Assembly (NCBI GenBank): GCA_047495785.1
Contig: JBLDXI010000003.1
Span: 3,224,001-3,288,000, forward strand
DNA from: Lepidodermella squamata
Lineage: Eukaryota > Animalia > Gastrotricha
Length of the DNA: 64,000 nucleotides
Reading direction: 5' to 3'
The notes beneath the pieces are model-generated. The model saw nothing but the letters and a program-made list of their open reading frames with translations, had not been told where the DNA came from and did not search any database. Numbering within the stretch: the stretch's first letter is position 1; the number at the start of each line of letters is the position of its first letter. Made by a program: the position numbers and the translations under genes. Positions 34,019-63,251 of the stretch are shown here, one piece after another.

Positions 34019-34693
34019 ATGCGTCTTGTTTTGGTTGCAGCTGTCGTTGCTCTTTTCTGCATCGGTGAGCATAGGAGAAATCGTATCAGTGATCTTCTTA
34101 TATTTGTGTTGATTTTTTCGCCAGCCGCCACCTCGGCGAACCTTGGCAAACGTGGACGTGGCAACAATGTTTCCGCCTCGGTGAACAAGCGCTCGGCCTC
34201 CGCCTCGGCTGGCAATGACGGTCGTCGTGGTCGCTTCTTCGGCCGCAAGGGTCGTCGCGGCAACTTCGCCTCTGCCTCGGTCAACCGCCGCTCCGCCTCG
34301 GCTTCTGCCGGCAACAACCGTGGTCGTCGCGGCTTCTTCGGTCGCCGTCGCGGTGGCAACTACGCCTCGGCCTCCGTCAACAAGAACTCCGCCTCGGCGA
34401 GTGCTGGTGACAACCGTGGTCGCCGTGGTCACTTCGTCGGCCGCCGTGGCTCCCGCTCGTCCCTGTCTGGTTCCTTCCGCGGCCGTCGCCACGGACGCGG
34501 TTTCTATGGCCGTCGCCACGGTGGTCGCTTCGGTCGCCGCGGTTTCGGATATGGCCGTCACGGTCGTCGCGGATTCCACGGCCGTGGTCGCCATGGTTAC
34601 GGCTACGGTCGTTTCGGCCATCGCGGTTTCTACAGCGGCTCGTCCTCGGCCGGCGACTTCTACGGCCGTCGCAATGGCTGGTACTGGCATTAA
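34019..34693 (+). CDS. Secreted Gly/Arg/His/aromatic-rich repeat protein, type A, copy 1 (204 aa)
   Basis: Exons 34019-34064 and 34125-34693. Signal-peptide-like MRLVLVAAVVALFCIAATSA. Three xSASVN(K/R)xSASASAG blocks, then a GRRHG/GFG/GYG-rich tail. Confidence 0.88.
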   Translation: MRLVLVAAVVALFCIGEHRRNRISDLLIFVLIFSPAATSANLGKRGRGNNVSASVNKRSASASAGNDGRRGRFFGRKGRRGNFASASVNRRSASASAGNNRGRRGFFGRRRGGNYASASVNKNSASASAGDNRGRRGHFVGRRGSRSSLSGSFRGRRHGRGFYGRRHGGRFGRRGFGYGRHGRRGFHGRGRHGYGYGRFGHRGFYSGSSSAGDFYGRRNGWYWH

Positions 34694-34837
34694 GCTCATC
34701 TTCGAGAACATTCCCCAAGAACATTCAAAAATTCAAATTTATCCAGCTATATTTGATGGAAAATGCAAATTATTTTGTCTATCAAGACTTTCCTAATTCA
34801 TCTTCATTTTAGAATATTTTGTTCTGATTTATCTAAG

Positions 34838-35981
34838 ATGCGAGGTTTCTTGGTTCTTTCTATCATCGCTTTGGGCTGCATCGGTAGGATTCACCCAGTT
34901 ATGCATAATCATAACGATTACTTTTTTTCCGTTTCCAGCCTTGAGCTCAGCAACGTTCGACTACGGTAAAAAGGACGGACACAAGGGCGGCTACGGCAAG
35001 GGATATGATGGTCACAAGGGTGGCTACGGCAAGGGCCATGGCAAGGGAGGTCGCCGTGCTTCCTACTCCGCTTCGGTCGACCAACGCGACACCTACGACC
35101 GCAAGTCCGCCTCTGCTGAGCAAGAGAACGGTGCCGTCGACTACGCCTCGGCCGATGCTTCCCACAACAAGAAGACCAGCGACAAGCACAAGCTGATCAA
35201 GAACCGCTCAGCCAACCGCGAACGCGCATCGGCCAGCTACGCCTCGGCCGGTAAGCGCGATTCCGCCTACGACCAGAAGAAGTCCAAGGCCGGCAGCAAG
35301 CGCCACGGCCGCGTTGTCCGCAAGAGCGACTCGGCTGCCTTCGCCCAGCACGCCAACGCCTACGAAAACTCTGGCGCCGCCGCCGCTGCCCAGAAGCACC
35401 GCCGCAACAAGAAGCACGGCCGCGCCGACCACAAGCGCAAGAGCGGCTTCACCAAGGACCAGGCTCACGACAAGCAAGGAGAGGAGATCGAGTACAAGAA
35501 GAAGAACTTCGCCGACAAGGGCCACAACAAGATCAACAATTTCAGCTACGAATCCGGAGCCAAGAACTTCGGTGCCTACGACTCTGACGGCGCCGCCACC
35601 ACCGCCACCCGCAAAAAGACCGCCAAGAAGGCCCACGGCAAGAAGTCCCGCAAGGCCCACTCTGCCGACTACGCTTCCCGCGACTCGACTGCCGCTGCTG
35701 CCGCTGCCTCGAAGAACGCTAAGCGCAACAAGGCCCACCACCGCCGCGCCTCGGCCTCGGCCACCCGCGCTGCCCACAATGCCCGCGACTACAAGGCCGG
35801 CCAGAAGAAGACCTTCGAATCTGACTCTGCCCACACCCGCAAGGCTGGAGCCAAGCACGGCCGCAAACGCGCCAATGCCTCGGCTGAACGTCGTACCCAC
35901 GACTTCCACGGTGCTGTCTCCGCTAGCTATCGCGATGGTCGCTATGGCAGGAAGGGCGGCAAGCACGGCTACTACTACTAG
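34838..35981 (+). CDS. Secreted Lys/Ala/Ser/Arg/His-rich protein, type B, copy 1 (362 aa)
   Basis: Exons 34838-34883 and 34939-35981. Signal-peptide-like MRGFLVLSIIALGCIALSSA. Strong codon bias (AAG, AAC, CAC, TAC, TTC). AATAAA at 36068. Confidence 0.88.
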
Positions 35982-36571
35982 TCTACTTAAAATGAACTTA
36001 ACTATCGAATCCCTGACTTTTCATTGATAGAGATTGAGATTTTTCTCGAAATGATTTATTTTTGGAAAATAAAGACTCAAGCGTTGTGAAATTCTGTTAT
36101 CTGATCTGTTAATTGAACCATTGCGTAGAACTGTTAGCTTATATCAGTGAAGTTCCAAAGTTTCACATTGGCAACAAGGTTGACTCCTTTGAAGATATCC
36201 AGGATGATCATCAAATAATCCCGCAAGGTAAAACATGTAAAGCGTTCGTTATTAATTGATCATACGAGTTGGTATCATCACTGAACTGCTGAAGGACTCG
36301 CCAATGATAGAAAATTAGAGTCTAATCTGAATATCTGACTCCAGGTTCAATGGGACTCAAAAACATTGCTGATTAGCGATAAGCCATATTTACAATTCTC
36401 AAAAAAATTACGAATGAATTAACAAATAATATGGCTCGAGAATTTTTTTCATGAATGGAATTTTTTTTAACTTGAAACTCGTAGTGAATGACTTTTCCAC
36501 GTAAACATTGAAATTATTTGTAACTCGATCTAACCAGCTTTCAAATCTAATAGGAAAATTTGTATTCATCC

Positions 36572-38053
36572 ATGAGAGAGGTCAAACAGGGCTGGGCACA
36601 GTACTCAGTGACGGTGGTTTTAAGCCTGGCCACGGCGATCAGCTGCCTCATATTTATGAGCGAAAAATCCCGGATTGCCAAATATTCGTTGATGTTCAAT
36701 GCCGACCATGGTATCTCTTATCCCGAATTTCGAACTGATTTCTTCTCGCCAGCGAATCTTTGCCGCTTTTCCACAAAATCTGTCTGCAATTTCACCGAAA
36801 CCAATCGGCCACCTCCATTAAATCAGCCTCTAAATGATCGCGAAATTTCGAGGCTGAAAAGCCTGAAAGAAGCAACAATTTTAATCGTAGCTTTCAACCG
36901 CGATAACCACTACGAAGTAGCGCCCCTAGTCAACGAGCTGTACCAGCCGATTTTTGCGGAAATTTACTTTTGCGGTTCAGGTCAACATTTTTCAACGACA
37001 ATCAACGCGAATTTCAATAATTCCCACCCTGATTTCTTGCAATATTTCGCCACCCGTTACTTTAATTGGGAAACTAAGAAACCTGTTCGATATGGCTACG
37101 GCGAGTGGATTTATATCTGCGTACCAATGGCTGTGAAAGCTTCCAAGTTGGGCAGCAAACTTCAAGGCATCGCTTTCTTGCATGACGATGTCCTATTCAC
37201 GTATTGGAAATTCATTTTAGACCCAGTTAAATTTGATTTGGATCGAAGTTATTCGAATTTTGACCCCAAGCGAAGGTCGGCCTATAATCCCGATCAGATG
37301 AGGTACTGCTCAAGGTGGAACCAATCGGCTGGCTGTCAGAAACGAGTATTTTGGAAGCCGGCGACAACTTACCAAGCTCAAACTATTGAGTTTTTTAATG
37401 TAAGAAATAAAATTAACTCGTATAAATTAAATTAAATTAATTCATAATTAAGGCGATTATATTGAAATGTCCGCAATTTAAAAAAACGAAAACATTGTTT
37501 TTTCTTAAATTTCTCACATTAATTAATTAATTAATTAATTAACTTTTTATTTTAATTAATAAAATAATTTTTTTACTTTTTTTAGAAAATGGCGGATATT
37601 TCAAAATCCTCCCCTGAATCTTTGGTTGCTCATTGCGAGCGTAACATGTCGAAATGGGCTGGAGGCCCTCGAAGACTAACCTTTGCCGCGTCGGATTTTT
37701 TCTATTTATCAAAGCAGCACATTTCCCATGCGATCGCCCTTTTTGAATTAATGGCTGAAACTCGGGTCTTTCAAGAAATTGCGATACCGTCAGTGTTCTC
37801 GTGTTTCGACTCGTTATCTTCAGGATGGTTTAGTAAGAAAAGGCTGTACATGAATGGTCTACCATCTGGATCGAGAGCAGCTGATTTGGTGGATTTTAAT
37901 GAACTAATAGCGCTTCATCCATTCAAATTTTCTGGTTTTGTGCAACAATTAAGACATGGAAATATAGATAACAAGAATTCTTTACCTGAGCTTTGCTTAC
38001 TTTGTGAACTGGCGAGCTTTTCATCTCGCTTGGGAAAATTGAATGAGAAATAA
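36572..38053 (+). CDS. STELLO/DUF288-like putative glycosyltransferase, type II membrane protein (about 431 aa)
   Basis: Exons 36572-37399 (donor AAT|GTAAGA) and 37586-38053. N-terminal TM (SVTVVLSLATAISCLIFM). Motifs ILIVAFN...LYQPIFAEIYFCG, GIAFLHDDVLFTYW, SDFFY...VFQEIAIP and HPFKFS resemble the STELLO C-terminal domain. Confidence 0.7.
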
Positions 38054-38705
38054 ACTAACGGCGGATACAACTGTTTGCTTTCACAATTTGAAGAAGGATA
38101 CATTTTATAAATTCGTAAATTCAGTTGGATGCTCAACAGATTCAGCCAGTTTTGAATGAATGTGGCAAGATTATTTTACGCAGATTCACTGAATCCAACA
38201 GTGATCCAACAGTTTCCAACAATCTCATATAGAAGTTCGTCTTAATCAACTCAATTTGCATTTCAGACCTCGGTAGGCAACGAGAAACGGATTACCTTTC
38301 GATCTTCAAAGACTCTTATGATGCAAAATTGTTAAAGTTGAAATAAGTTGAAAATTTTTTTTTATTTTTTTTTCACCGTGTGCCCATCAAGATTGTCTTG
38401 AGAAAAAATGAAATAATTCACGGATTCAAAACGGAAAGGAAAGTGGGGCAAAAATAAACCACAGACGAAAAACAACAAATGACAAGGGCAGATTCGAACC
38501 ACAATCACGCGATTTGTGTGAAGCTGACATGGAAAATAATAAAAATAAGCAAGTGGCACGCGTGACCAGTCGCCCTCATACGCAACAGGTATGCGGATAG
38601 CAGGCAAACAAGGCTTTAAAAGCTGGTCTCAAAATCGGAAATGTATCATTCCAATCCGTTGCCTCTTCTCTATTTCATCTCCTCACTGATCATTGAACTA
38701 TCAAC

Positions 38706-39740
38706 ATGCGTTTAACCCTCGTCGCAGCTGCTGTCGCTCTGTTCTGCATCGGTACAAGTTTACTTTGTAATGACTGGTTTCTTAATTAATTTTCGTCGTC
38801 CGTAGTTGCCGTTTCGGCGAATGATGCGTCCGCCTCTGTGAACAAGAAGGAAGCCTCCGCTTCGGCTGGCGTCGACAAGGCTCGTCATGGCGATCTGTAC
38901 TCTGGGAAACACGGTCGTGGATTCGGCTTCCATGGCCGCCGTCGTGGCAACTACGCTTCTGCCTCGGTTAACAAGAACTCTGCTTCCGCTTCAGCTGGCA
39001 ATGGCGGCCGTCGTGGTGGTCGCTTCTTCGGCCACAAGGGTCGTCGTGGTGGCAACTTCGCCTCGGCTTCCGTCAACAAGAACTCCGCCTCCGCCTCTGC
39101 AGGCTCCAACAAGGGCCGCAAGAACTTCGGCCGTCGCCATCACGCTGGTCGCTACTTCGGCCACGGTCGTCGTCGTGGAGGAAACTTCGCCTCTGCCTCG
39201 GTCAACAAGCGCTCTGCTTCAGCTGCTGCCGGTAACTTCCGTGGTCGCCGTGGCCATGGAAAATTCTTCGGCCGTCGTCACGGTGGTCGTCGAGGTGGCA
39301 ACTTTGCTTCCGCCTCCGTCAACAAGCGTTCTGCCTCTGCTGCTGCCGGTAACTTCCGTGGTCGTCGCGGCTACTTTGGTCGCCATCATGGTGGTCGCCG
39401 TGGTGGAAACTTTGCCTCGGCCTCAGTCAACAAGAACTCTGCCTCCGCCTCGGCTGGATCCTACGGCAAACGTCGTGGATTCAAGCATGGTCGCCGTTCT
39501 GTTTCCTTCTCTGGCCGCCGTCATGGCCGCCGCGGTCTGCATGGCCGTCGTCGCGGAGGAAACTTCGCCTCGGCTTCTGTTAACAAGCGCTCCGCCTCGG
39601 CTGCTGCTGGCAACTTCCGCGGCCGCCGTGGTCATCATGGCAAGTTCTTCGGCCGTCGTCACGGTGGTCGCCGTGGTGGTGACTTCGCCTCGGCTTCGGT
39701 TAACAAGAGTTCTGCATCTGCGTCAGCTGGTAACAACTAA
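38706..39740 (+). CDS. Secreted type A protein, copy 2 (326 aa, 8 SASVNK-SASA blocks)
   Basis: Exons 38706-38751 and 38806-39740. Signal-peptide-like MRLTLVAAAVALFCIVAVSA. Repeats of N(F/Y)ASASVNK(N/R)SASA(S/A)AG separated by G/R/H/F spacers. Confidence 0.9.
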
Positions 39741-39920
39741 AGCTGGCATCCGAGCTTGATTTACCCATATAGGACTAACATAGTATTGTGTATGGTGAAG
39801 AAATTATTTTTTTTTGCTTGGGATACTTACCTGTTCAAAATTGGAAGGATAATATTAGTGTCACGACTGTGATCCAAATATATCTCATTTTTTTCCCGAA
39901 TTAGAGTTAACCCTTATAAA

Positions 39921-41161
39921 ATGCGTGTCTACCTCGCTCTCGCTGTGATTATCCTGCTTGCCGCTACCGGTAATTTCCTGCCATCCTATCTTTTAAACAT
40001 GGTTGTTTTATTTTTGACATTTTCATTGTAGTCTCTTCCGGTGGTAAGGGCAAAGGTGCCAAGAAGGGTGGCAACAAAAAGGAAGCTTCGTTCTCTGCCT
40101 CGGTTGACCAACGCGACACCTACGACCGCAAGTCCGCCTCTGCTGAGCAGGAATCCGCTGCCGTCGACTACGCCTCGGCCGATGCTTCCCACAACAAGAA
40201 GACCAGCGACAAGCGCAAGCTGATCAAGACCCGATCGGCCAGCCGCGAACGCGCCTCGGCCAGCTACGAATCTGCCGGCAAGCGCGATTCCGCCTACGAC
40301 CAGAAGAAATCGAAGGCTGGCAGCAAGCGCCACGGCCGCGTTGTCCGCAAGAGCGACTCGGCTGCCTCCGCCAAGCACGACAACGCCTACGCCGACTCTG
40401 GCGCCGCCGCCGCTGCCCAGAAGCACAAGCGCAACAAGAAGCACGGCCGTGCCGACCACAAGCGCAAGGCTGCTTTCCAGAAGGACCAGGCCCGCGACAA
40501 GGCCGGCGAGGTGATCGAGTTCAAGAAGAAGACCTTCACCGACAAGGGCCACAACAAGGTCAACAAGTTCAGCTTCGAGTCCGGCTCGCAGGAGTTCGCC
40601 AAGGCCGACTCTGACGGCGCCGCCACCACTGCCAGCCGCAAGAAGACCGCCAAGAAGGCCCATGGCAAGAAGTCCCGCAAGGCCCACTCTGCCGACTACG
40701 CTTCCCGCGATTCGCAGGCCTCGGCCGCCGCTGCCTCGAAGAAGGCGAAGCGCAACAAGGCCCACCAACGCCGTGCCTCGGCATCCGTTGCCCGTGACTC
40801 GCGCAACGCCCGCGACTACAAGACCAGCAGCAAGAAGACCTCCGTCTCCGACTCTGCCCACGCCCGCAAGGCCTCGGCCAAGCACGACCGCAAACGCGCC
40901 TCCGCCTCGGCTGAGCGTGCCACCCACGATTTCGCTGCGTCTGTCTCTGGCAGCTACCAAGAACAGAAGAGCGCCAGCGCCAAGAAGGCCAGCCACAGCG
41001 CTGCTAAGGGCAAGAAGGCATCCAAGAAGGGTGGCAAGAAGGCTTCCAAGAAAGAAGGCAAAAAGGGTGGAAAGAAGACCGAAAAGAAGGGCGGCAAGAA
41101 GGGAGGCTACAACCACGGCTACAACAAGGCGTCTTCAGCCGGCAAGAGCTACACCTACTAA
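39921..41161 (+). CDS. Secreted type B protein, copy 2 (392 aa, Lys/Gly-rich C-tail)
   Basis: Exons 39921-39969 and 40032-41161. Signal-peptide-like MRVYLALAVIILLAATVSS. Core is colinear with copy 1. AATAAA at 41254. Confidence 0.9.
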
Positions 41162-41532
41162 GCGAATATAACCAAATTATTTTTGATTGCGATTTTGACG
41201 ATCTACAAACATATTTGTGATTTGTGATTGTGATTTCTCGATTAATTAAATGAAATAAATCAGGAGATTGGAACTGAGGATGCTTTTTATTCGGGTACAC
41301 TTAAAGAAAGGAAAAACCCTCATTTCTCGTTAAAAAATTATTTATGCTTGGAAAATGAACACCGGCTTTCATGAAATGAACATGAAGTTAACAAGGTTAT
41401 TAAAAGCTTCTTAAATGGCGATATTCTTGTTATCGACAGCGGATATTATGCGATCAGCATTTCAGATGCGTATGATAGATGGCAGAGGCGAAGCCCTCCT
41501 CAATTATTCCAATTAAGACCGGAAGCCATGGT

Positions 41533-41539
41533 ATAAAAG
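41533..41539 (+). promoter_or_regulatory. TATA box of the type C gene
   Basis: TATAAAA about 100 nt before ATG 41632. Conserved as TATATAA (62649-62655) in the diverged flank of copy 3, together with ATTATTCCAATTAAG. Confidence 0.7.
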
Positions 41540-41631
41540 CAGCGGGAATTCGGTTCCACATCATCAGCCATCTCTTGCTTCGATTTTCAAATTATTTATA
41601 ATTTCTCTTCATCTCATTATCCTATTCAACC

Positions 41632-42139
41632 ATGCGTGCTTTCCTCGCCATTGCTGCTATCGTCCTGCTCGGCCTTGGTAACACACTTTCTTCCTCACTT
41701 ATGCCCATAACCTGAAATTCCCTATTGCATTGTTTCAGCTTACTCTGAGGCCAAGGTGTGGAATGTTGAATCGAAAGAAATGCACCGCCACTACGAGAAG
41801 AAGGTGAGCGCCTCGGCGAGCCGCTCCTTCGAGAACAAGAAGGCTTTCCGCAAGGGACGTGCCTTCCCGATGAAGAAGCGCCACGGCAAGAAGATGAACA
41901 AGCGCCGCGGATCCTTCTCCAAGTCGGTCTCCAAGTCTGTTTCCTACTCGCGGTCCGCCTCGTTCTCCGGCAACCGCTGGGGCAAAAACAAGCGATTCGG
42001 TGGTCGCAAGTTCGGCAAGCACGGCAAGAACTTCGGCTACGGCCGCAAGGGCGGCAAGTTCGGCCACGGCAAGTTCGGCGGCCGCAAGGCCAACAAGGGC
42101 TCGTACTCCTTCAGCAAGTCCGTCAGCGTCTCCAACTAA
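41632..42139 (+). CDS. Secreted Lys/Ser/Gly/Phe-rich protein, type C, copy 1 (148 aa)
   Basis: Exons 41632-41677 and 41739-42139. Signal-peptide-like MRAFLAIAAIVLLGLAYSEA. Alternating S-x blocks (SFSKSVSKSVSYSRSASFS) and KFG repeats. AATAAA at 42195. Confidence 0.9.
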
Positions 42140-42576
42140 ATTATGATCACAAGAACTTTCCATCATTGATGAATCACGAGTAATTTTCATGCGAAATAAA
42201 AAATCATTTAAAAACTCCATTTGAGATTTTTGTCTATGATGAGGCCTGCGATGAATAACGGATTGGTGGTCGTACGCACTAACTTCAAATTCCTTAAGCC
42301 GAAAATTGAGGACGCCCTCAAATTTAACTCAAAAATAAAAGCAAACGATTCTATCTTTTTGAAAACTTGAAAAATCACAAGATTTGGATATTATCGAGAA
42401 GCTGTATTTTTTGTGCTATTCGCATACATTCATAGCTTATAGTAGGCAACTCGAGTCATAATAGATAAAAGATTCATTATTTTACAAACGTTAAACGCAA
42501 AGTTATGGCTATCAGACGCGTACAATTATGCCTAACCACAATCTTTTTCCAGCTATGCCATGTGGTTGTGGCGCAC

Positions 42577-43177
42577 CCCAGGCGAACACGCGTCATATGA
42601 AATTACGTGATAATATACGACGGAAATGTGACCGGCATGTTACATCATTAATCGAACGATTTCGTCGTATGGACATCACATCTCGCGGTTACTTGGTCGT
42701 CACATTTCAAACGCGGCGAAAATTATATCATATCGTGGTCACATCGCCGATGCGCCAAAAATTATATCACATCCCGGTTACATCCAAGTCACATCGCCGA
42801 AGATGTGATCGCGAAGTGATATAATTTTTGGCGCGTTCGAAATGTGACGACCGTACGACGGCTACATAATTCGACAAAAAATAGAAGAAACAAAGCTATT
42901 CGAGTAAATATGATATAATTTGTTAACATCACATCGCAATTTTTACCAATAATCTGATTATTTTTAGATTGTACATATGCAAATTAAACTGCTTTCTCTT
43001 TCTCCGCTTTAAAAAATAGATACCACACGATAGGACGAATATATGACGAACATGTGACGTTTTTCGCAATTATCATATAACTAGGCGGACATTCCTCAGT
43101 ATAACCGTCGCTCATGTTTTGATATGACGAAATTTCGGAATTTCACATGTCGGTCGTATGATCCGTGTTCGCCTGGG
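42577..43177. mobile_element. Non-autonomous TIR element (CCC...GGG ends, 2-bp TSD; CMC/EnSpm-like)
   Basis: TIR CCCAGGCGAACACG at 42577-42590 and its complement at 43164-43177. Flanked by AC on both sides. Many internal TCACAT/ATGTGA motifs. Confidence 0.75.
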
Positions 43178-43841
43178 ACGTGCTGTCAACAAAGATTCCA
43201 ACTCGAAACCCTTAGTTTTTTAATACCTGGAGGTTGAGATTTCTTTTCTGAAATTCCTGGAAAATCAGGGAAAAATCATTGAAGTTCGCTCCAAGTATCG
43301 ACATGTGGACCATGATGCGGGCTATCTAGGCCATTGAAAAAATGCTTCAATTTAAATTTAAATGACCGTGAAAATTATTTTTCTTTGTGATTGCGAAACC
43401 ATTTTTCCTCGATAACACCATTTGAAATGCCTTCAAAAATTTCGTAAAAATAATCAGCTTGTTCCTCGTGATTTCCTCCCTCCGTATCCATCAACGAAAA
43501 CCTTGGGAAAATCGAAACCGTCACGGAACCAGTAAAAAAACCAATCGACTATTTTGTTTACTTTTCCTGCAAGCGCTGATGAATCAGCTGACCATCTGGC
43601 GCCCATGGCGTAGCACCCTTTTTCTCGTGAGTAAGCAGTCTATCCTAAATTATGTCTATGGTGCGCGCGCTACCTTAATCCGCAAAGTGTAAACAAAACA
43701 TGCGATGCGCCACCTTCACCAGTGTTTTGTGGACAAAACGTGTAAATCGTAGCGCGAAACTTGAAGTCGCCGCCGAAAACCGTAAATTGTAATCCACACG
43801 CATAAAATCGCAGTTGATAATTGAAATAACGTAAACTTGTC

Positions 43842-44126
43842 ATGGATGAGCAATACGACCTTGACCCGGAGGACATTGTGTTGGAAGGAGATGTCGAGGC
43901 GGAAAATGTTGATGGCCGAGACCAAGACCACGACAACGAGAACCTTATGGGACCGTCCGAACAGCCGGCTAAAACAGTGACCAAGTAGACCTGGTTTCAC
44001 GTGCAAACATTCGACAGTTACGATCTGGTGCATGAGCATGCCAAGGCCATGGCAGCCGAACATGGCTTCAGTGACTGGAGCTACAGTAAGGTCACAGTCC
44101 TAAAAGATGGAACGACCAAATTGTGA
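43842..44126 (+). pseudogene. Degenerate Mutator-like (MULE/FAR1-type) transposase N-terminus
   Basis: ATG 43842, acidic leader, in-frame TAG at 43986, then WFHVQTFDSYDLVHEHAKAMAAEHGFS. By eye this resembles the F-x-S...Y/A...GF motif of MuDR/FAR1 DNA-binding domains. Confidence 0.4.
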
Positions 44127-44634
44127 CGAGTTGCCGATCTTCTTGATGTTGTCAGCGGCGGTTAGTGGATCACAAAGGCTCACAAAGGTATGTCATAAAC
44201 CCAACATAACGTCGGCGTTTGAGGGCTGGGAGTTGGACCCCGCCGAAGAATGAAACCAAATTTCTCATCTTGGTTCGCCTCTTCAAGTACTTTGCTGAAG
44301 GATCGCTGAAAAATATGGTTTGAATAACAGTATGAATGCATCAGGTTTCACATAAACAGCAGGAATCACCCAACTTATCTTTTCTTCTTTGTCGATAATT
44401 ATTATTGCGAAATTAATTGAAAAAATCGGCACCGCTACCTCGGCATAGGTCCGCAGTGCAACGATAGAGTCGTCGATACCCGGTAGACTCGGTTTTTCCA
44501 GGTGAATATCGACAACCAGTCAACTAACGGGTGTGACAACCCTTAACTAGCAAGTTAACTTAATGAAAACCATTCCAGTCCATGCATTTTAAGGTGGTCT
44601 TTCTTTCGATCACTTACTTATCGTTCAAAAGTTC

Positions 44635-44960
44635 AAAATAAGAGTTGGTGCGAAGTGCCTGAAAAATGGCAATGAGTAATTCGCTGACTTTCCGGCCGGA
44701 AACGACTGGATCTCAAACAAAACTGGATTATCGACCTCGGACAACGGCTATCAAATTCTCGACAAACTGTGTCGACGTTGCAGCAGTTCATGGTGGAAAC
44801 AAGCCCATCAACACTACCCGGTGTCGCTATGCGCTATGGTGATGCCGAGAAAGAAACCCTCGCTCATGTGTTAGGCGCTTGTAACCACAATAGCTTCCTC
44901 ATCAACAAACGGCATAACACTGTCCGCAGAATGATTGCTAACGCGTTCAGAAGTCTCCAG
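44635..44960 (+). mobile_element. Frameshifted fragment of an RLE-type non-LTR retrotransposon (R2/NeSL-like zinc knuckle region)
   Basis: Pieces in shifting frames: FPAGNDWISNKTGLSTS, TAIKFSTN...TTRCR and KETLAHVLGACNHNSFLINKRHNTVRRMIA (CCHC knuckle followed by the RHN motif). Confidence 0.7.
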
Positions 44961-47137: not shown

Positions 47138-47143
47138 TCTATT

Positions 47144-52466: not shown

Positions 52467-52903
52467 GTGCGCCACAACCACATGGCATAGCTGGAAAAAG
52501 ATTGTGGTTAGGCATAATTGTACGCGTCTGATAGCCATAACTTTGCGTTTAACGTTTGTAAAATAATGAATCTTTTATCTATTATGACTCGAGTTGCCTA
52601 CTATAAGCTATGAATGTATGCGAATAGCACAAAAAATACAGCTTCTCGATAATATCCAAATCTTGGGATTTTTCAAGTTTTCAAAAAGATAGAATCGTTT
52701 GCTTTTATTTTTGAGTTAAATTTGAGGGCGTCCTCAATTTTCGGCTTAAGGAATTTGAAGTTAGTGCGTACGACCACCAATCCGTTATTCATCGCAGGCC
52801 TCATCATAGACAAAAATCTCAAATGGAGTTTTTAAATGATTTTTTATTTCGCATGAAAATTACTCGTGATTCATCAATGATGGAAAGTTCTTGTGATCAT
52901 AAT

Positions 52904-53411
52904 TTAGTTGGAGACGCTGACGGACTTGCTGAAGGAGTACGAGCCCTTGTTGGCCTTGCGGCCGCCGAACTTGCCGTGGCCGAACTTGCCGCCCTTGCGG
53001 CCGTAGCCGAAGTTCTTGCCGTGCTTGCCGAACTTGCGACCACCGAATCGCTTGTTTTTGCCCCAGCGGTTGCCGGAGAACGAGGCGGACCGCGAGTAGG
53101 AAACAGACTTGGAGACCGACTTGGAGAAGGATCCGCGGCGCTTGTTCATCTTCTTGCCGTGGCGCTTCTTCATCGGGAAGGCACGTCCCTTGCGGAAAGC
53201 CTTCTTGTTCTCGAAGGAGCGGCTCGCCGAGGCGCTCACCTTCTTCTCGTAGTGGCGGTGCATTTCTTTCGATTCAACATTCCACACCTTGGCCTCAGAG
53301 TAAGCTGAAACAATGCAATAGGGAATTTCAGGTTATGGGCATAAGTGAGGAAGAAAGTGTGTTACCAAGGCCGAGCAGGACGATAGCAGCAATGGCGAGG
53401 AAAGCACGCAT
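52904..53411 (-). CDS. Secreted type C protein, copy 2
   Basis: Mirror of 41632-42139 with identical translation. Confidence 0.9.
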
Positions 53412-53881
53412 GGTTGAATAGGATAATGAGATGAAGAGAAATTATAAATAATTTGAAAATCGAAGCAAGAGATGGCTGATGATGTGGAACCGAATTCCCG
53501 CTGCTTTTATACCATGGCTTCCGGTCTTAATTGGAATAATTGAGGAGGGCTTCGCCTCTGCCATCTATCATACGCATCTGAAATGCTGATCGCATAATAT
53601 CCGCTGTCGATAACAAGAATATCGCCATTTAAGAAGCTTTTAATAACCTTGTTAACTTCATGTTCATTTCATGAAAGCCGGTGTTCATTTTCCAAGCATA
53701 AATAATTTTTTAACGAGAAATGAGGGTTTTTCCTTTCTTTAAGTGTACCCGAATAAAAAGCATCCTCAGTTCCAATCTCCTGATTTATTTCATTTAATTA
53801 ATCGAGAAATCACAATCACAAATCACAAATATGTTTGTAGATCGTCAAAATCGCAATCAAAAATAATTTGGTTATATTCGC

Positions 53882-55122
53882 TTAGTAGGTGTAGCTCTTG
53901 CCGGCTGAAGACGCCTTGTTGTAGCCGTGGTTGTAGCCTCCCTTCTTGCCGCCCTTCTTTTCGGTCTTCTTTCCACCCTTTTTGCCTTCTTTCTTGGAAG
54001 CCTTCTTGCCACCCTTCTTGGATGCCTTCTTGCCCTTAGCAGCGCTGTGGCTGGCCTTCTTGGCGCTGGCGCTCTTCTGTTCTTGGTAGCTGCCAGAGAC
54101 AGACGCAGCGAAATCGTGGGTGGCACGCTCAGCCGAGGCGGAGGCGCGTTTGCGGTCGTGCTTGGCCGAGGCCTTGCGGGCGTGGGCAGAGTCGGAGACG
54201 GAGGTCTTCTTGCTGCTGGTCTTGTAGTCGCGGGCGTTGCGCGAGTCACGGGCAACGGATGCCGAGGCACGGCGTTGGTGGGCCTTGTTGCGCTTCGCCT
54301 TCTTCGAGGCAGCGGCGGCCGAGGCCTGCGAATCGCGGGAAGCGTAGTCGGCAGAGTGGGCCTTGCGGGACTTCTTGCCATGGGCCTTCTTGGCGGTCTT
54401 CTTGCGGCTGGCAGTGGTGGCGGCGCCGTCAGAGTCGGCCTTGGCGAACTCCTGCGAGCCGGACTCGAAGCTGAACTTGTTGACCTTGTTGTGGCCCTTG
54501 TCGGTGAAGGTCTTCTTCTTGAACTCGATCACCTCGCCGGCCTTGTCGCGGGCCTGGTCCTTCTGGAAAGCAGCCTTGCGCTTGTGGTCGGCACGGCCGT
54601 GCTTCTTGTTGCGCTTGTGCTTCTGGGCAGCGGCGGCGGCGCCAGAGTCGGCGTAGGCGTTGTCGTGCTTGGCGGAGGCAGCCGAGTCGCTCTTGCGGAC
54701 AACGCGGCCGTGGCGCTTGCTGCCAGCCTTCGATTTCTTCTGGTCGTAGGCGGAATCGCGCTTGCCGGCAGATTCGTAGCTGGCCGAGGCGCGTTCGCGG
54801 CTGGCCGATCGGGTCTTGATCAGCTTGCGCTTGTCGCTGGTCTTCTTGTTGTGGGAAGCATCGGCCGAGGCGTAGTCGACGGCAGCGGATTCCTGCTCAG
54901 CAGAGGCGGACTTGCGGTCGTAGGTGTCGCGTTGGTCAACCGAGGCAGAGAACGAAGCTTCCTTTTTGTTGCCACCCTTCTTGGCACCTTTGCCCTTACC
55001 ACCGGAAGAGACTACAATGAAAATGTCAAAAATAAAACAACCATGTTTAAAAGATAGGATGGCAGGAAATTACCGGTAGCGGCAAGCAGGATAATCACAG
55101 CGAGAGCGAGGTAGACACGCAT
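53882..55122 (-). CDS. Secreted type B protein, copy 3
   Basis: Mirror of 39921-41161 with identical translation. Confidence 0.9.
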
Positions 55123-55302
55123 TTTATAAGGGTTAACTCTAATTCGGGAAAAAAATGAGATATATTTGGATCACAGTCGTGACACTAATATTATCCTTCC
55201 AATTTTGAACAGGTAAGTATCCCAAGCAAAAAAAAATAATTTCTTCACCATACACAATACTATGTTAGTCCTATATGGGTAAATCAAGCTCGGATGCCAG
55301 CT

Positions 55303-56337
55303 TTAGTTGTTACCAGCTGACGCAGATGCAGAACTCTTGTTAACCGAAGCCGAGGCGAAGTCACCACCACGGCGACCACCGTGACGACGGCCGAAGAACT
55401 TGCCATGATGACCACGGCGGCCGCGGAAGTTGCCAGCAGCAGCCGAGGCGGAGCGCTTGTTAACAGAAGCCGAGGCGAAGTTTCCTCCGCGACGACGGCC
55501 ATGCAGACCGCGGCGGCCATGACGGCGGCCAGAGAAGGAAACAGAACGGCGACCATGCTTGAATCCACGACGTTTGCCGTAGGATCCAGCCGAGGCGGAG
55601 GCAGAGTTCTTGTTGACTGAGGCCGAGGCAAAGTTTCCACCACGGCGACCACCATGATGGCGACCAAAGTAGCCGCGACGACCACGGAAGTTACCGGCAG
55701 CAGCAGAGGCAGAACGCTTGTTGACGGAGGCGGAAGCAAAGTTGCCACCTCGACGACCACCGTGACGACGGCCGAAGAATTTTCCATGGCCACGGCGACC
55801 ACGGAAGTTACCGGCAGCAGCTGAAGCAGAGCGCTTGTTGACCGAGGCAGAGGCGAAGTTTCCTCCACGACGACGACCGTGGCCGAAGTAGCGACCAGCG
55901 TGATGGCGACGGCCGAAGTTCTTGCGGCCCTTGTTGGAGCCTGCAGAGGCGGAGGCGGAGTTCTTGTTGACGGAAGCCGAGGCGAAGTTGCCACCACGAC
56001 GACCCTTGTGGCCGAAGAAGCGACCACCACGACGGCCGCCATTGCCAGCTGAAGCGGAAGCAGAGTTCTTGTTAACCGAGGCAGAAGCGTAGTTGCCACG
56101 ACGGCGGCCATGGAAGCCGAATCCACGACCGTGTTTCCCAGAGTACAGATCGCCATGACGAGCCTTGTCGACGCCAGCCGAAGCGGAGGCTTCCTTCTTG
56201 TTCACAGAGGCGGACGCATCATTCGCCGAAACGGCAACTACGGACGACGAAAATTAATTAAGAAACCAGTCATTACAAAGTAAACTTGTACCGATGCAGA
56301 ACAGAGCGACAGCAGCTGCGACGAGGGTTAAACGCAT
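55303..56337 (-). CDS. Secreted type A protein, copy 3
   Basis: Mirror of 38706-39740 with identical translation. Confidence 0.9.
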
Positions 56338-58101
56338 GTTGATAGTTCAATGATCAGTGAGGAGATGAAATAGAGAAGAGGCAACGGATTGGAATGATAC
56401 ATTTCCGATTTTGAGACCAGCTTTTAAAGCCTTGTTTGCCTGCTATCCGCATACCTGTTGCGTATGAGGGCGACTGGTCACGCGTGCCACTTGCTTATTT
56501 TTATTATTTTCCATGTCAGCTTCACACAAATCGCGTGATTGTGGTTCGAATCTGCCCTTGTCATTTGTTGTTTTTCGTCTGTGGTTTATTTTTGCCCCAC
56601 TTTCCTTTCCGTTTTGAATCCGTGAATTATTTCATTTTTTCTCAAGACAATCTTGATGGGCACGCGGTGAAAAAAAAATAAAAATTTTTTTTCAACTTAT
56701 TTCAACTTTAACAATTTTGCATCATAAGAGTATTTGTAGTTCGAATGGTAATGCCCTTTCGTGGCATAGCCGAGGCCTGAAATGCAAAGTGAGAACATAA
56801 AAGACAAACTAACTACCACGACCTTTCTGACGACATGAATGATATTCCGTTAGGTGGTTTATTTCCTATCAATATTTAACTTCAGCCAAGCCTTTGTGAT
56901 CGACCTGTTAGACCGAGTTCACAGACAGGCAACTATTCAAGATATAGTTGATGTCGCTAATGTTGGCGATGTAGATAATGAAGCCGAAAAAATCGGACAC
57001 CGCTAGTCAAAATTAGCATCAAAAGTGTACCAATTGCTGACGTGTGCGCGTATCGTGATTTCAGGAAGCTTTTGAATGGCTGCCATGAACCCGAGAAGCC
57101 ACGCATTATCTGCGTGGAACGAGCGCAACCCTGAGATACTGAGAAAAATTACCAAGGCTTGAAAACCCTTGACCAAGTTTGAGAATTGAATTTCAAATGC
57201 TGACGGTTGACAATATCGTTAAATCTCGGCTCTTATATAGATGAAATATTCCGTGTATATTTGTTGCGTCGCATTTTATGGAGTTTCGCGTAAACTCACT
57301 CAGGAATTTATTGCGAAAACATTCGTTAGTTAGCCTTGATAATATTTCGACACCTACCTTTAATCAGAAATCCAACCTCACATTCAATTGCAGACCTTGC
57401 CCTCGACCTAACTTTTGATGGGTCCTTGGCGTTGTCAATGGTACTTGGGCCTTCATGAAAAGTTACATTTGAACATAACAATCGAAATTCCTTGATACGC
57501 TGGCTGATACGGTATCACCCCCGGAGATTCCGTACTACGCGGAATTCAATGAAACGCCACGAAATTTGCTTCATCAGTTGGATCCAATACGTATGTGAAT
57601 GTTATTCATATTGCCAGGCAACTCAGGTTCCCACGAAAGCTGACCAATATTCAAAGCTGTTCCACCTTCTCATCAACAATTAAAAGGGGGTGTGTAATAT
57701 GAAACAAGTGTCATCGATTGATTTATAAATAGGAACAATTCACTATGGGCTCTTATCTTGTCGAGCGTCTCATATGGAGGTAAAAGATGAAAGATTCACA
57801 TTGATATTTTGCGTCCCATGGCTATTCTTATTTTCCATGTTATTGAAAATTCAAAGTCGCTGAATACATTTTTACTGAGAATCGCATTTGTTCAACCGAA
57901 AATTATCCAATGTTAATAATATTATCTTATTTTTGAGAAAACAGTGCCAAAATGTAGGGGATCCATTGATTATTACAAACAATCAGCCGAATTCATACTC
58001 TTGCGTGAAAACCTGCTGTTTTAAATTTGATTGCCGGAATGCTCATTTTTTACTAGGGCCTGAATTCATGGTACTGAAAAGACTCACCAAGCCCCTGATT
58101 G

Positions 58102-59482: not shown

Positions 59483-61891
59483 ATGAAACTGTTTAGCTTC
59501 GCTATTTTTGAAGCAGTCTTATATGTTTCGACTGGCCAGCTGATGAAAAAATACAATTTGTCAATGGTTCAAGTGTTTCCGAGTAGTCACAAAGGATGCT
59601 CAGAAGCTGTCAAAGTCATTGTTGATCACGTGAATAGTCGCCCCGATGTTTTGCCCGACTACAATATCGTACCTCACTACCAGGACGAGGTGGACTTCTG
59701 GATCGGCTATGCCCCTATTCGAGCCCTTGTCAACTACGGCCGGGATTGGGAAAATCGACCGAATGATGGCGTAAACATTCGATCGCCAGTTTTTGTCGGC
59801 CCGTTCTTCTCAATCGCATGTGAACCCTTAGGCAAACCTCTGACATACTTCGATATGATAGGCTTGTCGATCGCTTGTGCAGCCCCAAGTTTGGCTGACC
59901 ATGTAACCTATCCGAATTTGTACCTAGTCCAGCCCACCGGAGAATTGGGTGCAATATCCCTGGTTCATTTCATGAAAGATGTCGGGAGGTGGTCGAAAGT
60001 CGGCATTGTGACTCTAGCTGCGTTTCCTAACGATTATATAGCCGCGATTTATGCGCAGAAATATTCAGCGCAAAGTGGAATTTTCATACCCACATTCAAC
60101 GCAATCCTTGACGTAACTGATGACTCGATGAATGGCTTACTTTACCATGACATAAGGATAATTCTGGTCTACATCACCCAAGAGGCTATTCTGTGGAGAT
60201 TTCTTTGCAAATGTTACCTTTCCGGCTTGACAGGACCGAAGTATCTATTTTTCTTGAGCAATAATCTCGCAGTGGAATTTAACAATTCCGTACAACTCGC
60301 GATCAACGATTCTTGGTGTAATAGAGACATCATCCGGGAACAATTGCGCTACTCGATATTTTTCGGTCCAAACAATCAGATAATCGACGACAGCAGGAAT
60401 AGCGAGCTAGGCTATAACAAGACTGTTTTTGACGCTTGGCTGTCTCGATTGCTGTCGACAAAAACAGCAGCTGCTTCCTTAAAATACGTCTGCCATGATG
60501 CCACTTTGATGGCTATTTACGCAATGCAAGATGCTGATAATCGCTTAAAACGTGATTACAACATGTCCTTGCTCGATATGAACACAAACCCGACCTTTGT
60601 CATGAAAGTCGTCAACGATTCAGTACTAAATGTCAATGTGTCCGGATTGCGAGGTCAAATGCAGTTCAGCAAACGTGGTTACATCGAAAACAACCCGATT
60701 TTATATACCTACTATGATCCTAAGGGCTACCGAACTAAATATATGTCAGTTGAGGTCGATGCATCGAAAGATTACATGTTCTACGGTCGTTACAAAATCC
60801 TGGAGATGGAACCCTGGGACTGGGCAGCTTGGCAGAATAACGGCCGCCCGCCTAAAGATCGAGCTTTCACAGTTTCATTGGCAAGAGACTTCCCTGATGA
60901 CATCGCCCTGGCGGTCAGAGTTTTAATAGGAATACTCTCGGTGATGGAAACAGCAATTTTGGCTGTAACAATCAGATGCAGGAATAGGATCGCTTCACCA
61001 TCAGTTAAGGTGGCTGGCTATCTTGGCTGTTTAGCCCTGTGCGTAGCAGGTATAGCATTTACCGTTAAAATCAGCAAGGACATGGTCGTAATTGCTGTGG
61101 TTAGGATCTCTCTTCTGGTTTTCGCCATGTCCGTCCTAAGTGGTGTCCTTTCATTTCGAGCGATCGTTTTGGCTAGGAAAATGCCGGTAACATTCCCAAA
61201 GAAGTTGAAGGTGAAACAAGCTCGATTCGCTGTTATGATGAAGGATTTGGGCTTAGAGCCGAGATCCATAGTTTCTCTGTTTAAAGCACGCTCGGCAGTT
61301 GCTGATTCATATGCTGTCCATACTCCTAGCCGTGCGGCGACTTCATCGACAAATCAACAACATACAAAAGATTTTGAACGCGGAATCGGGATTAAAGTTT
61401 TGTTTTACACCGGAATTTTCACCGTGATCAATGTGGCTTTACTTGTGGTTTGGTTGAAGATCGGCTCACTTACTTGCTACGATTTTAATGCCCCGAAACT
61501 GGACAATTACCATTTAGCCAGCGATACTTATATCGATGTTTCGATGGTGATCTGCTCGACGAAAAACTACGCAATTTGGATGATTAGCATAGTTCTATTC
61601 CACGTGCTTCTGTTATCCTATGGCACGTATCAAGGCTATTGTGTCAAAGCTAGGCTGAAAACGCTGTCTCGCCGTGTTCGTGTGGATGTGATAGGCATGT
61701 TGCTAGGGACACTGAATGCTATATCTCTGTTGCTATGCACGATTCTCATCGTGGTGACTCTCGGCGATCAGATCAAGCAACACATCGCTGTTTCATTCGC
61801 TTGTATCATCTTGTCGGCTACCACTTGCCTGAGCCTGTGCTATAAAACTTTGAAGGGTTTATTAGCAAGAGCATCCAGGTCATCATCATAG
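59483..61891 (+). CDS. Class C GPCR, GABA-B-receptor-like architecture (802 aa, single exon)
   Basis: Signal-peptide-like N-terminus. Venus-flytrap/ANF-receptor-like domain (VNSRPDVLPDY, VGPFFSIAC, LADHVTYPNL, WSKVGIV, GLTGPKY). W..NGRPPKD linker with no Cys-rich domain. Seven hydrophobic segments. AATAAA at 62017. Confidence 0.85.
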   Translation: MKLFSFAIFEAVLYVSTGQLMKKYNLSMVQVFPSSHKGCSEAVKVIVDHVNSRPDVLPDYNIVPHYQDEVDFWIGYAPIRALVNYGRDWENRPNDGVNIRSPVFVGPFFSIACEPLGKPLTYFDMIGLSIACAAPSLADHVTYPNLYLVQPTGELGAISLVHFMKDVGRWSKVGIVTLAAFPNDYIAAIYAQKYSAQSGIFIPTFNAILDVTDDSMNGLLYHDIRIILVYITQEAILWRFLCKCYLSGLTGPKYLFFLSNNLAVEFNNSVQLAINDSWCNRDIIREQLRYSIFFGPNNQIIDDSRNSELGYNKTVFDAWLSRLLSTKTAAASLKYVCHDATLMAIYAMQDADNRLKRDYNMSLLDMNTNPTFVMKVVNDSVLNVNVSGLRGQMQFSKRGYIENNPILYTYYDPKGYRTKYMSVEVDASKDYMFYGRYKILEMEPWDWAAWQNNGRPPKDRAFTVSLARDFPDDIALAVRVLIGILSVMETAILAVTIRCRNRIASPSVKVAGYLGCLALCVAGIAFTVKISKDMVVIAVVRISLLVFAMSVLSGVLSFRAIVLARKMPVTFPKKLKVKQARFAVMMKDLGLEPRSIVSLFKARSAVADSYAVHTPSRAATSSTNQQHTKDFERGIGIKVLFYTGIFTVINVALLVVWLKIGSLTCYDFNAPKLDNYHLASDTYIDVSMVICSTKNYAIWMISIVLFHVLLLSYGTYQGYCVKARLKTLSRRVRVDVIGMLLGTLNAISLLLCTILIVVTLGDQIKQHIAVSFACIILSATTCLSLCYKTLKGLLARASRSSS

Positions 61892-62747
61892 TATCTGAAG
61901 ACTAATTCCACCGATTTCATTATTTTTCAAATTAAGCTGATTGTGTAATTTTCTCGATAGTGATCAGACACATCTTATTCGATATTTGGGAAGTATCATC
62001 TGACCACATTAAAATCAATAAAGTCTTTAGCGTATCCGTAAAATAGTTCTCAGTATGAATGCATTATAGTTTCTCGAACACTTCGGGATCTAGTGACAGC
62101 TGAGGCCATAGTGACGTATCACAGCGTTCGATTAAAATTTCAATTTTATCCTCATTTCATATTTGGAGCCAGTTTATCGGGAAAGTGTCGATGCTTCGTG
62201 GATAAAACTTGAAATCAGAGAATTAGCTGGCAACTCTCGTGACCATCATTCAGTTCAACTGCTACTCACTTGAACTTGAAAGGAATGCTACAGAATGCTT
62301 TTCAGTCAAGACAGTGAATGAATGCCAAAGACAATCTTGAGTTGTAGCCGGAAACAACATTTGAGGTTTTTCTATTGACTTGGCACTCACTTGAAACGCA
62401 ACGCCTGAGTTGAATCGCGGCAGCAGAAATATCATATTTCGCGCAAATTTCAAAAAATGAATAAATGGTTGCGTGAAAATTCCTATTCAATTTATCATTT
62501 AGAAACCACTTCAGTTTTCCTATGAGATCGCTTAATCGATAGCATCCGCCCTGCATTTTAGATGCGCATCATATCAAATGCGGAATCAAATCAAATAATC
62601 AGGCGAGTTCTTTTGCAAAATTATTCCAATTAAGGCCGAAGTCAATGGTATATAAGCAGCGAAAATTGGGTTCAAAATTATCAGCTATATTCATTGCTTC
62701 GATTTTCGAATTGATAATTTTTCTTCATCCACTTCTCTTGCTCAATA

Positions 62748-63251
62748 ATGCGTGCTTTCCTCGCCATTGCTGCTGTCGTCCTGCTCGGACTTGGTAACAA
62801 ACTTTCAACCTTTTGCCGATAACCTGAAATTCATTTCTGCATTGTTTCAGCTTACTCTGAGGCCAAGGTCTGGAATGTTGAATCGAAAGAAATGCACCGC
62901 CACTACGAGAAGAAGGTGAGCGCCTCGGCGAGCCGATCCTTCGAGAACAAGAGGGCTTTCCGCAAGGGACGTGCCTTCCCGATGAAGAAGCGCCACGGCA
63001 AGAAGATGAACAAGCGCCGCGGATCCTTCTCCAAGTCGGTCTCCAAGTCTGTTTCCTACTCGCGGTCCGCCTCGTTCTCCGGCAACCGCTTCGGCAAGAA
63101 CAAGCGATTCGGTGGTCGCAAGTTCGGCAAGCACGGCAAGAACTTCGGCTACGGCCGCAAGGGCGGCAAGTTCGGCCACGGCAAGTTCGGCGGTCGCAAG
63201 GCCAACAAGGGCTCTTACTCCTTCAGCAAGTCCGTCAGCGTCTCCAACTAA
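62748..63251 (+). CDS. Secreted type C protein, copy 3 (148 aa)
   Basis: Exons 62748-62793 and 62851-63251. Differs from copies 1/2 by I>V in the signal, K>R and W>F. Has its own TATA box and an AATAAA at 63303. Confidence 0.9.

Follow-up and report, generated by a model that had tools for sequence, protein, structure and literature searches.

What is encoded by a run of small two-exon genes in the genome of the gastrotrich Lepidodermella squamata, and are its products made together? The genes lie between positions 34019 and 63251 of a 64,000-nucleotide (nt) stretch (hereafter the window; G000:C3:3224001-3288000, where C3 is the contig) of an assembly of 121.2 Mb in 151 contigs, and they belong to three types, A, B and C. 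The initial annotation had taken them for nine genes encoding three co-secreted components of one extracellular material. We put at roughly 0.5 the probability that, as the sequences suggest, the A, B and C proteins would serve as bulk secreted structural material (cuticle or scales, eggshell, or adhesive).

The published L. squamata assembly (122.8 Mb, 157 contigs, 43.3% GC) dates from 2024 and derives from the amplified DNA of a single animal, and the transcriptome available for the species is from adults only (PMC11660948). Reads came from a 2024 DNA run and a 2015 RNA-like run, and the runs in the read-depth comparison are labelled X1-X5. Run X1 has zero depth over the spacer between genes B2 and C1 (~470-496 nt), where the DNA run X5 has a depth of ~150-345; X1 therefore behaves as RNA. 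Besides the window, 20 further 10-kb stretches were taken around genome matches (paralogue loci labelled L001 and so on), and the window and these loci together yielded 48 canonical paralogous gene models. Homology searches and fold predictions used the exon-2 products as queries.

A splice-aware scan from 34019 onward recovered all nine two-exon models at their annotated positions. The first pair consists of A1, a short A-type gene of 204 amino acids (aa) (34019-34693, forward strand; exon 1 34019-34064, intron 34065-34124 of 60 nt, exon 2 34125-34693), and B1, of 362 aa (34838-35981, forward strand; exon 1 34838-34883, intron 34884-34938 of 55 nt, exon 2 34939-35981). A second pair is formed by A2, a long A-type gene of 326 aa (38706-39740, forward strand; exon 1 38706-38751, intron 38752-38805 of 54 nt, exon 2 38806-39740), and B2, of 392 aa (39921-41161, forward strand; exon 1 39921-39969 of 49 nt, intron 39970-40031 of 62 nt, exon 2 40032-41161), and is followed by C1, of 148 aa (41632-42139, forward strand; exon 1 41632-41677, intron 41678-41738 of 61 nt, exon 2 41739-42139). 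On the reverse strand, C2 (52904-53411), B3 (53882-55122) and A3 (55303-56337) are mirror copies of C1, B2 and A2, respectively, with identical coding sequences. C3, of 148 aa (62748-63251, forward strand; exon 1 62748-62793, intron 62794-62850 of 57 nt, exon 2 62851-63251), shares 98% protein identity with C1. The reported order, A-B three times and A-B-C twice, is therefore correct, and so is the existence of nine models, but A3, B3 and C2 mirror A2, B2 and C1 within an inverted duplication, so that the window holds six distinct genes and three mirror copies.

All these genes share one design. Exon 1 measures 46 nt (49 nt in B2 and B3) and starts with ATG-CGN (Met-Arg), followed by 12-13 hydrophobic residues; the GT..AG intron, in phase 1, spans 54-62 nt; and a single long exon without Cys codons follows. 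Exon-1 length and intron position are kept in 48 of 48 paralogous models. The introns of these models vary from 48 to 71 nt and are a multiple of three in only 15 of 48, the unspliced reading frame stays open in only 5 of 48, the GC fraction is 0.32 in introns against 0.62 in exon 2, and introns are less conserved (identity 0.63-0.65) than the flanking exons (0.69-0.86). Because position is kept while length is free of multiples of three, frames close when unspliced, and the segment is AT-rich and less conserved, these comparisons indicate that the genes and their phase-1 intron are real and that the design is not due to chance. On the other side of the balance, no splice joint at the A, B or C introns was seen among the matches listed, which comprised only short contigs of a multi-copy family. 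Several long antisense and off-frame open reading frames (ORFs) over the A and B exons, at 33962-34711, 35208-35966 and 39986-41116 (all on the reverse strand) and in the mirror copies, were rejected as genes because they are by-products of GC-rich, codon-biased repeats.

The described extreme codon bias is evident from a comparison with the neighbouring spectraplakin gene: GCG 4% versus 31%, CGG 1% versus 28%, and AAA 8% versus 48%. The mature proteins contain no Cys, have isoelectric points (pI) of 10.3-12.0 and net charges of +34 to +65, and are, as originally described, polycations in which Ser/Ala blocks or (SX)n runs alternate with Gly/Arg/Lys/His/aromatic blocks. Judged by hand, the N-termini comprise a charged n-region (Met-Arg), an h-region within the 7-15 residues expected of signal peptides, and small residues at -3 and -1, with putative cleavage sites (arrow) TSA↓N, VSA↓N, SSA↓T, VSS-G↓G and SEA↓K. 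The A, B and C products are thus predicted to be secreted, with canonical-looking signal peptides.

The window captures a small part of the families. Six-frame genome searches gave 48 matches for A, 39 for B and 46 for C, which group into ~27 A, ~30 B (some with stops or fragmentary) and ~40 C loci, roughly 100 genes altogether. Most matches fall within a mega-cluster of ~1.1 Mb (C3:2.47-3.62 Mb), with small outposts on contigs C1, C9, C12 and C29. The high copy number is visible in reads too: in X5, possibly the very data from which the assembly was built, depth is ~150-170 in spacers versus 1500-4800 over coding parts, that is, ~10-30-fold above the single-copy level. Fifteen C copies elsewhere in the genome have 94-98% protein identity to C1, which suggests an evolution of the dosage type rather than a diversifying one; the proposed amplification for dosage agrees with the near-identical copies and the strong codon bias, both of which fit such selection. 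Runs X2-X4, which carry a second organism label, contain contigs ~90% identical to parts of A2 and B2, so the A and B families occur in more than a single sample; neither the B2-C1 spacer nor C1 has any depth in these runs.

The A proteins are built on a 15-residue module, A-S-A-S-V-N-K-(R/N)-S-A-S-A-(S/A)-A-G, separated by linkers. A1 has three modules of the form ASASVN(K/R)xSASASAG and a Gly/Arg/Tyr/His/Phe tail with a C-terminal GWYWH, and A2 has nine modules with Gly/Arg/Phe/His linkers. We counted 84 modules in 18 genes; they exist in 19 amino-acid versions against 75 nucleotide versions, the four pattern-free Ala positions are Ala in 84 of 84, and Asn6 is kept in 79 of 84. The few peptide versions set against the many nucleotide versions, together with the invariant Ala positions, therefore indicate that the module peptide is under strong selection. 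The modules are constant between copies, whereas the linkers (13-36 residues, median 20; Gly 29%, Arg 27%, Phe 13%, Asn 9%, His 7%, Lys 7%, Tyr 2%) vary freely in sequence and length. In AlphaFold modelling that drew on 12 A paralogues, every module was predicted as a 6+3+6 beta-hairpin, with low confidence (predicted local distance difference test, pLDDT, 42; predicted template modelling score, pTM, 0.45). No A protein contains a Ser-x-Glu site. Short A proteins (~205 aa, C-terminal GWYWH) are mostly paired with a B protein ending in HGYYY, and long A proteins (261-386 aa where paired) mostly with a B protein ending in (S/A)YTY or AYNY; the pair at locus L012 mixes the two types. A divergent, unpaired A-type gene of 454 aa (L018:2526-3953, forward strand, corresponding to G000:C3:3617525-3618952) has an extra N-terminal segment rich in Ala/Lys/Gln/Glu, and its linkers contain Lys instead of Arg while the module is fixed; the linkers therefore tolerate swapping of the basic residue.

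In B proteins a conserved core of Ala/Lys/Ser/Asp/His lies between tails rich in Gly/Lys/Tyr/His (GHKGGYGKGYDGHKGGYGKG), as seen in B1. The 13 B paralogues are 65-89% identical to B2, with ~150 invariant columns over the core of ~300 residues, and variation is confined to the tails. The ratio of nonsynonymous to synonymous substitution rates (dN/dS) in the core is 0.23-0.46 (median 0.35, 78 pairs), which indicates that the core is under purifying selection and is not mere low-complexity sequence. AlphaFold predicted long helices for the core, again with low confidence (pLDDT 46). Fourier analysis of the B2 core gave no top-five peak at 3.5 or ~11 residues for any residue class (power at most 9); since the 3.5-residue periodicity is missing, B is not an obvious coiled coil, and we rejected both a coiled-coil silk and a hydrophilin of the late embryogenesis abundant (LEA) type. 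The core holds three S-x-E sites (SASAE) and degenerate copies of a basic-ASxSA-...-RDxY motif; because this RDxY-type motif echoes the A module, A and B may share ancestry.

The 148-aa C proteins contain three (SX)n runs, SASASRSFE, SFSKSVSKSVSYSRSASFS and SYSFSKSVSVSN, with Gly/Lys/Phe/His spacers between them; the first is an (SX)4E run, and the other two lack Glu. Longer C-type variants, of 205 aa (L001:7927-8597, reverse strand) and 175 aa (L007:5876-6463, reverse strand), have spacers composed of GHNFGNK(W/Y) repeats or of additional (SX)n runs, which reveals more variety in the C family than the window alone would lead one to expect.

The arrangement of the genes bears on whether the three proteins are produced together. 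In 17 cases (16 distinct and one mirror copy) an A gene is followed by a B gene on the same strand at a distance of 99-198 nt, and AATAAA occurs in none of these gaps, whereas it is found 90-120 nt past the stop codons of B and C genes. A TATA element precedes 20 of 20 A genes (72-99 nt before the ATG) and 12 of 14 C genes (83-102 nt before the ATG) but only 1 of 20 B genes; it is usually accompanied by an ATCA(G/T) initiator (Inr) 20-40 nt downstream, and the combination is present in 17/20 A, 11/14 C and 0/20 B genes. Conversely, in 18/20 B genes, as opposed to 3/20 A and 0/14 C genes, the ATG is preceded at 11-25 nt by a pyrimidine-rich tract that ends in TAG↓A. The only B gene with a TATA element, at locus L014, has no A gene ahead of it, and at locus L003 a B gene lies directly behind an A-type promoter and 5' untranslated region (UTR), the A gene between them being absent.

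The window conforms to this pattern. A1 has TATA at 33926-33932, with an Inr-like ATCAATCAG ~30 nt downstream, and A2 has TATA at 38615. The A1-B1 spacer (34694-34837, forward strand, 144 nt) and the A2-B2 spacer (39741-39920, forward strand, 180 nt) contain neither AATAAA nor TATA, and AATAAA follows ~95 nt past the stop of B1 and ~115 nt past that of B2. In the A1-B1 spacer, a T-rich tract leads to TTTTAG↓AAT, by which an exon would begin at 34813 (25 nt upstream of the B1 ATG); the A2-B2 spacer has an acceptor-like TTTTTTTCCCGAATTAG↓AG, by which one would begin at 39905 (16 nt upstream of the B2 ATG). In X1, one contig reaches out of the A2 coding sequence and ends at 39858, 118 nt into the A2-B2 spacer, whose depth is ~100-275. 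Because the promoter is found only before A, AATAAA is missing after A, and an acceptor-like site precedes B, the simplest reading of these sequences would make A and B one transcription unit, a two-gene operon resolved by spliced leader (SL) addition and amplified as a unit. B would probably be released by spliced-leader trans-splicing at the conserved acceptor 11-25 nt before its ATG, and A and B would thereby be co-secreted by the same cells at a fixed ratio.

Same-strand genes 99-198 nt apart, a promoter before the first only, and a splice-acceptor-like site just before the second are features that the A-B unit has in common with the spliced-leader operons of nematodes, flatworms, tunicates and rotifers. 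Unlike in those operons, there is no AAUAAA after the upstream gene, and the two-gene unit is itself amplified ~20 times. We know of no description of operons in gastrotrichs, a subject on which no literature search was made.

Three points weigh against such a unit. No spliced-leader-bearing or bicistronic read was seen among the short contigs listed, polyadenylation of A genes may depend on a non-canonical signal, and what precedes B could instead be an acceptor for cis-splicing or belong to a promoter that went unrecognised. The alternative, which we regard as less likely, is that A and B are separate genes, B having an unrecognised TATA-less promoter, and that their adjacency results from duplication of a two-gene block. 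Apart from the missing reads, this would accord with weak AT-rich elements 60-80 nt before the ATGs of B1 and B2 (CTATATTTG and GATAATATTAG) and with an X1 depth several-fold higher for B than for A. It leaves unexplained why TATA and Inr together mark A and C genes and never B, why the acceptor-like site keeps its distance from the ATG in 18 of 20 B genes while the rest of the spacer sequence diverges, and why AATAAA is missing after A yet present after B and C; the L003 arrangement and the RNA-like coverage running into the A2-B2 spacer also speak for the single unit.

For C the evidence differs. Both C1 (TATA at 41532, with an Inr) and C3 (TATA at 62649) have their own promoter elements, and a B-C operon was rejected given these elements, the 470-nt length of the spacer, the AATAAA after B, and the zero RNA-like depth in the B2-C1 spacer. 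Summed word depth in X1, a crude measure that pools near-identical paralogues, is 2x10^3-5.5x10^4 over A2, 3x10^4-2x10^5 over most of the B2 exon, and 12-74 over C1, and this contrast of three to four orders of magnitude argues against co-expression of C with the other two in the X1 sample. Of the three components thought to be co-secreted, two, A and B, thus appear coupled (17 pairs, each with one promoter), but C is not supported as the third; we infer that this relative is under separate regulation and serves at a different stage or site.

None of the three families could be recognised, in agreement with the original description. A Pfam scan, which covered all six distinct exon-2 products along with four ORFs nearby, retrieved no family for A, B or C; a word-based search of 5.8 billion proteins with A2 and B2 gave no match at E<=0.001; an exhaustive HMMER search of 1.84 billion representatives with a profile of the 13 B paralogues gave none at E<=0.001; and language-model look-ups with B2 and C1 produced no usable match. 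For C, outside relatives were sought through Pfam and the language-model atlas only. A full-text literature search for four characteristic peptide strings of A, B and C found no paper. A, B and C thus appear to be lineage-restricted (orphan), undescribed families. Genome searches detected neither nematode SL1 RNA, nor the N-domain of nematode cuticle collagens, nor the R&R chitin-binding domain of arthropod cuticle proteins.

The nearest parallels in design are found among secreted biomaterials. Caddisfly H-fibroin is described as [(SX)nE] runs followed by Gly-rich basic spacers (PMC13267644), and the phosphorylated Ser runs of the silk as forming Ca2+-bridged beta domains (PMC4929942). A partial likeness is seen in C, whose single (SX)4E run is joined by two longer (SX)n runs among Gly/Lys spacers, and in the SASAE sites of B; the L. 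squamata genome has three tandem genes for Fam20C-like secretory-pathway kinases (G000:C7:2760273-2780864). There is, however, no homology, and the S-x-S runs of A contain no acidic residue. H-fibroin is, moreover, one giant gene of the arthropod silk gland whose product has a light-chain partner, whereas here ~100 small two-exon genes belong to a non-arthropod (no R&R domain).

Suckerins, which form the solid of squid sucker ring teeth without mineral or chitin, are a large family of secreted, Cys-free, His-containing proteins in which Ala-rich beta-sheet modules alternate with Gly/aromatic-rich ones. The A proteins likewise alternate a fixed small-residue module with a Gly/aromatic linker, but they are not homologous to suckerins, the linkers are rich in Arg/Lys (G 29%, R 27%, F 13%, Y 2%) where suckerins have Gly-Tyr-Leu, the module is an unvarying 15-mer whose Val-Asn-Lys turn is conserved, and the animal and tissue differ. 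Among underwater cements, the Pc proteins of the sandcastle worm combine Gly/Lys/His/Tyr-rich polycations with (phospho)proteins rich in Ser, the mixture setting from a coacervate, and barnacle cp19k consists of alternating Ser/Thr/Gly/Ala and charged blocks. The B tails and C spacers resemble Pc and cp19k sequences; in contrast to the cements, there is no homology, cationic and Ser-rich blocks occur in one chain, and no tyrosinase gene that would form 3,4-dihydroxyphenylalanine (DOPA) was detected (the search controls were silent). Flatworm eggshell precursors, Gly/Tyr proteins tanned by tyrosinase, differ in that the six distinct exon-2 products had no match to the Pfam family TES. Because homology is absent, A, B and C are not members of the H-fibroin, suckerin or cement families; they would be convergent modular secreted proteins of the biomaterial type, alike in design only.

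Several lines of evidence favour a structural role for the secreted products. Judged by the RNA-like coverage and codon bias, the A and B genes are very highly expressed, and ~100 homogenised copies with extreme codon bias suggest a need for large amounts of product, as is typical of structural proteins that are produced in bursts. In silks, beta-sheets are formed by small-residue modules such as (Ala/Ser)n hairpins and (SX)n strands, and linkers of Arg/Lys with Phe/Tyr/His are of the kind that coacervates and binds polyanions. We propose that the small-residue modules would form beta-sheet crystallites, while the cationic/aromatic linkers would hold the protein in solution or in a coacervate up to its release and would engage either a polyanionic partner or, once phosphorylated, the Ser-x-Glu runs of B and C. 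What results would be an extracellular solid made in bulk; the likeliest are the candidate materials of a scaled, egg-laying chaetonotid, namely its cuticle or cuticular scales, its eggshell and its adhesive. Our literature search found no paper on the molecules of the gastrotrich cuticle, scales, eggshell or glue. A more specific version, in which this private set of ~100 genes builds a major gastrotrich structure (cuticular scales or the eggshell, which hardens fast) from operon-coupled A and B, with C serving at another stage, we advance only tentatively; in it A would be a block copolymer of beta-hairpins and polyarginine, B its conserved partner, helical or disordered, and C an (SX)n protein of the caddisfly kind.

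Some observations stand in the way of this proposal. A caddisfly-like mechanism based on phosphoserine and cations is possible, by analogy, for B and C but not for A, since A has no Ser-x-Glu acidic primer and phosphorylation thus cannot explain its role. A genome search for tyrosinase (PF00264) returned no candidates, so that hardening of the Tyr-rich proteins by this enzyme looks unavailable; the controls of that search were silent too, leaving the absence of the gene unproven. The AlphaFold models of both A and B are of low confidence, B may be just disordered, and very cationic sequences rich in Gly/Arg/His/aromatic residues are also typical of antimicrobial peptides.

Two other functions have therefore to be weighed, each of which we consider improbable. 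The proteins could be soluble polycations that condense a polyanion, such as mucus or glycan in granules, an egg or sperm coat, or a desiccation guard, without forming a load-bearing solid. Their extreme charge and the low-confidence predictions of disorder or helicity are compatible with such a role; a STELLO-like glycosyltransferase gene family is partly embedded in the cluster, and the Ala, Lys, Ser and Asp composition of B recalls hydrophilic protectant proteins. Yet the invariant hairpin-like modules and (SX)n runs are a hallmark of beta-sheet materials, B lacks the 11-residue periodicity, and the glycosyltransferase family is scattered over many contigs. Alternatively, a defence secretion might consist of antimicrobial polycations, acting whole or cleaved at Arg-Arg or Lys-Arg, with the Ser/Ala modules as neutral spacers. 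The net charge and pI, the Gly/Arg/His/Phe/Tyr linkers and the many dibasic sites would suit this function, as would the alternation of variable linkers with constant modules, since variable segments between constant ones are a pattern of some multi-peptide precursors. The strongest constraint, however, acts on the neutral 15-residue module rather than the cationic segments; since residue 8 of the module is either Arg or Asn, the Lys-Arg site is unconserved, and there is no fixed flanking cleavage motif. Furthermore, the copies are homogenised instead of diversified, the conserved 300-residue core of B is unlike any peptide precursor, and ~100 copies with extreme expression exceed the needs of known peptide defence genes. 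A structural material accordingly remains our preferred interpretation.

The inverted duplication that contains the mirror copies comprises a left arm at 38291-43812, carrying A2-B2-C1, and a right arm at 51231-56752, carrying C2-B3-A3, separated by a unique spacer of 7418 nt (43813-51230). The arms have 11 mismatches in 5522 nt; nine of these lie at 38297-38379, less than 90 nt from the outer boundary at 38291, the others at 42377 and 43810, and none of the 11 affects coding sequence. Outside the arms, similarity fades gradually rather than ending sharply. We argue that the graded edges and the long unique spacer mark a real, recently converted palindrome; an assembly artefact is unlikely, for although the probable source assembly was made from whole-genome-amplified DNA, a known maker of inverted chimeras (PMC11660948), the arms differ at 11 sites, the outer edge is graded, and 7.4 kb of unique spacer is enclosed. 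That spacer holds a reverse-transcriptase element (44935-47785, forward strand) with a weak reverse-transcriptase match and long ORFs.

Of the neighbouring genes, a giant spectraplakin-type gene (2904-31751, forward strand) fills the first half of the window, with plakin repeats that take up ~12 kb in two huge exons (2904-7481 and 7472-14956) and, after these, exons of spectrin repeats; the introns of the gene are AT-rich and of low complexity. The presence of a gene with plakin and spectrin repeats identifies the window as animal DNA. COX1 was not found in a search of the assembly, which therefore contains no mitochondrial contig. Between the A1-B1 and A2-B2 pairs lies a STELLO/DUF288-like glycosyltransferase gene (36560-38053, forward strand), whose family has 35 genome matches, five of them in the mega-cluster (including C3:3325476, 3337271, 2488342 and 2491375); a link to the A, B and C proteins is possible. 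An intronless ORF of 802 aa (59483-61891, forward strand) combines an ANF_receptor ligand-binding domain with a multi-span membrane part and resembles family C receptors; it had no match at E<=1e-10 in a large protein collection and no exact record. Elsewhere in the genome, a tandem expansion of intronless lipocalin genes (G000:C31:651980-695058 and 423203-429448) has at least 33 matches. Its best member resembles apolipoprotein D (PDB 2hzq, E 2.5e-11), and a tardigrade SAHS-like identity was rejected on that account.

For the biology of gastrotrichs, A, B and C are the obvious first candidates for the molecules of the cuticle, scales, eggshell or glue: in the one adult RNA-like data set they rank among the sequences with the heaviest coverage, and they occupy more than 1 Mb of a 121-Mb genome. 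The gene-bearing palindrome offers a natural system for studies of concerted evolution. For biomaterials research, the interest lies in a compact design that dispenses with Cys and combines a fixed, hairpin-like module of 15 residues with polycationic linkers that can be tuned; it apparently arose independently of silks, suckerins and cements. If our reading is true, L. squamata would possess an independently evolved protein biomaterial in which an operon fixes the ratio of two material components, and the amplified A-B unit would show in clear form how an operon couples two secreted partners.

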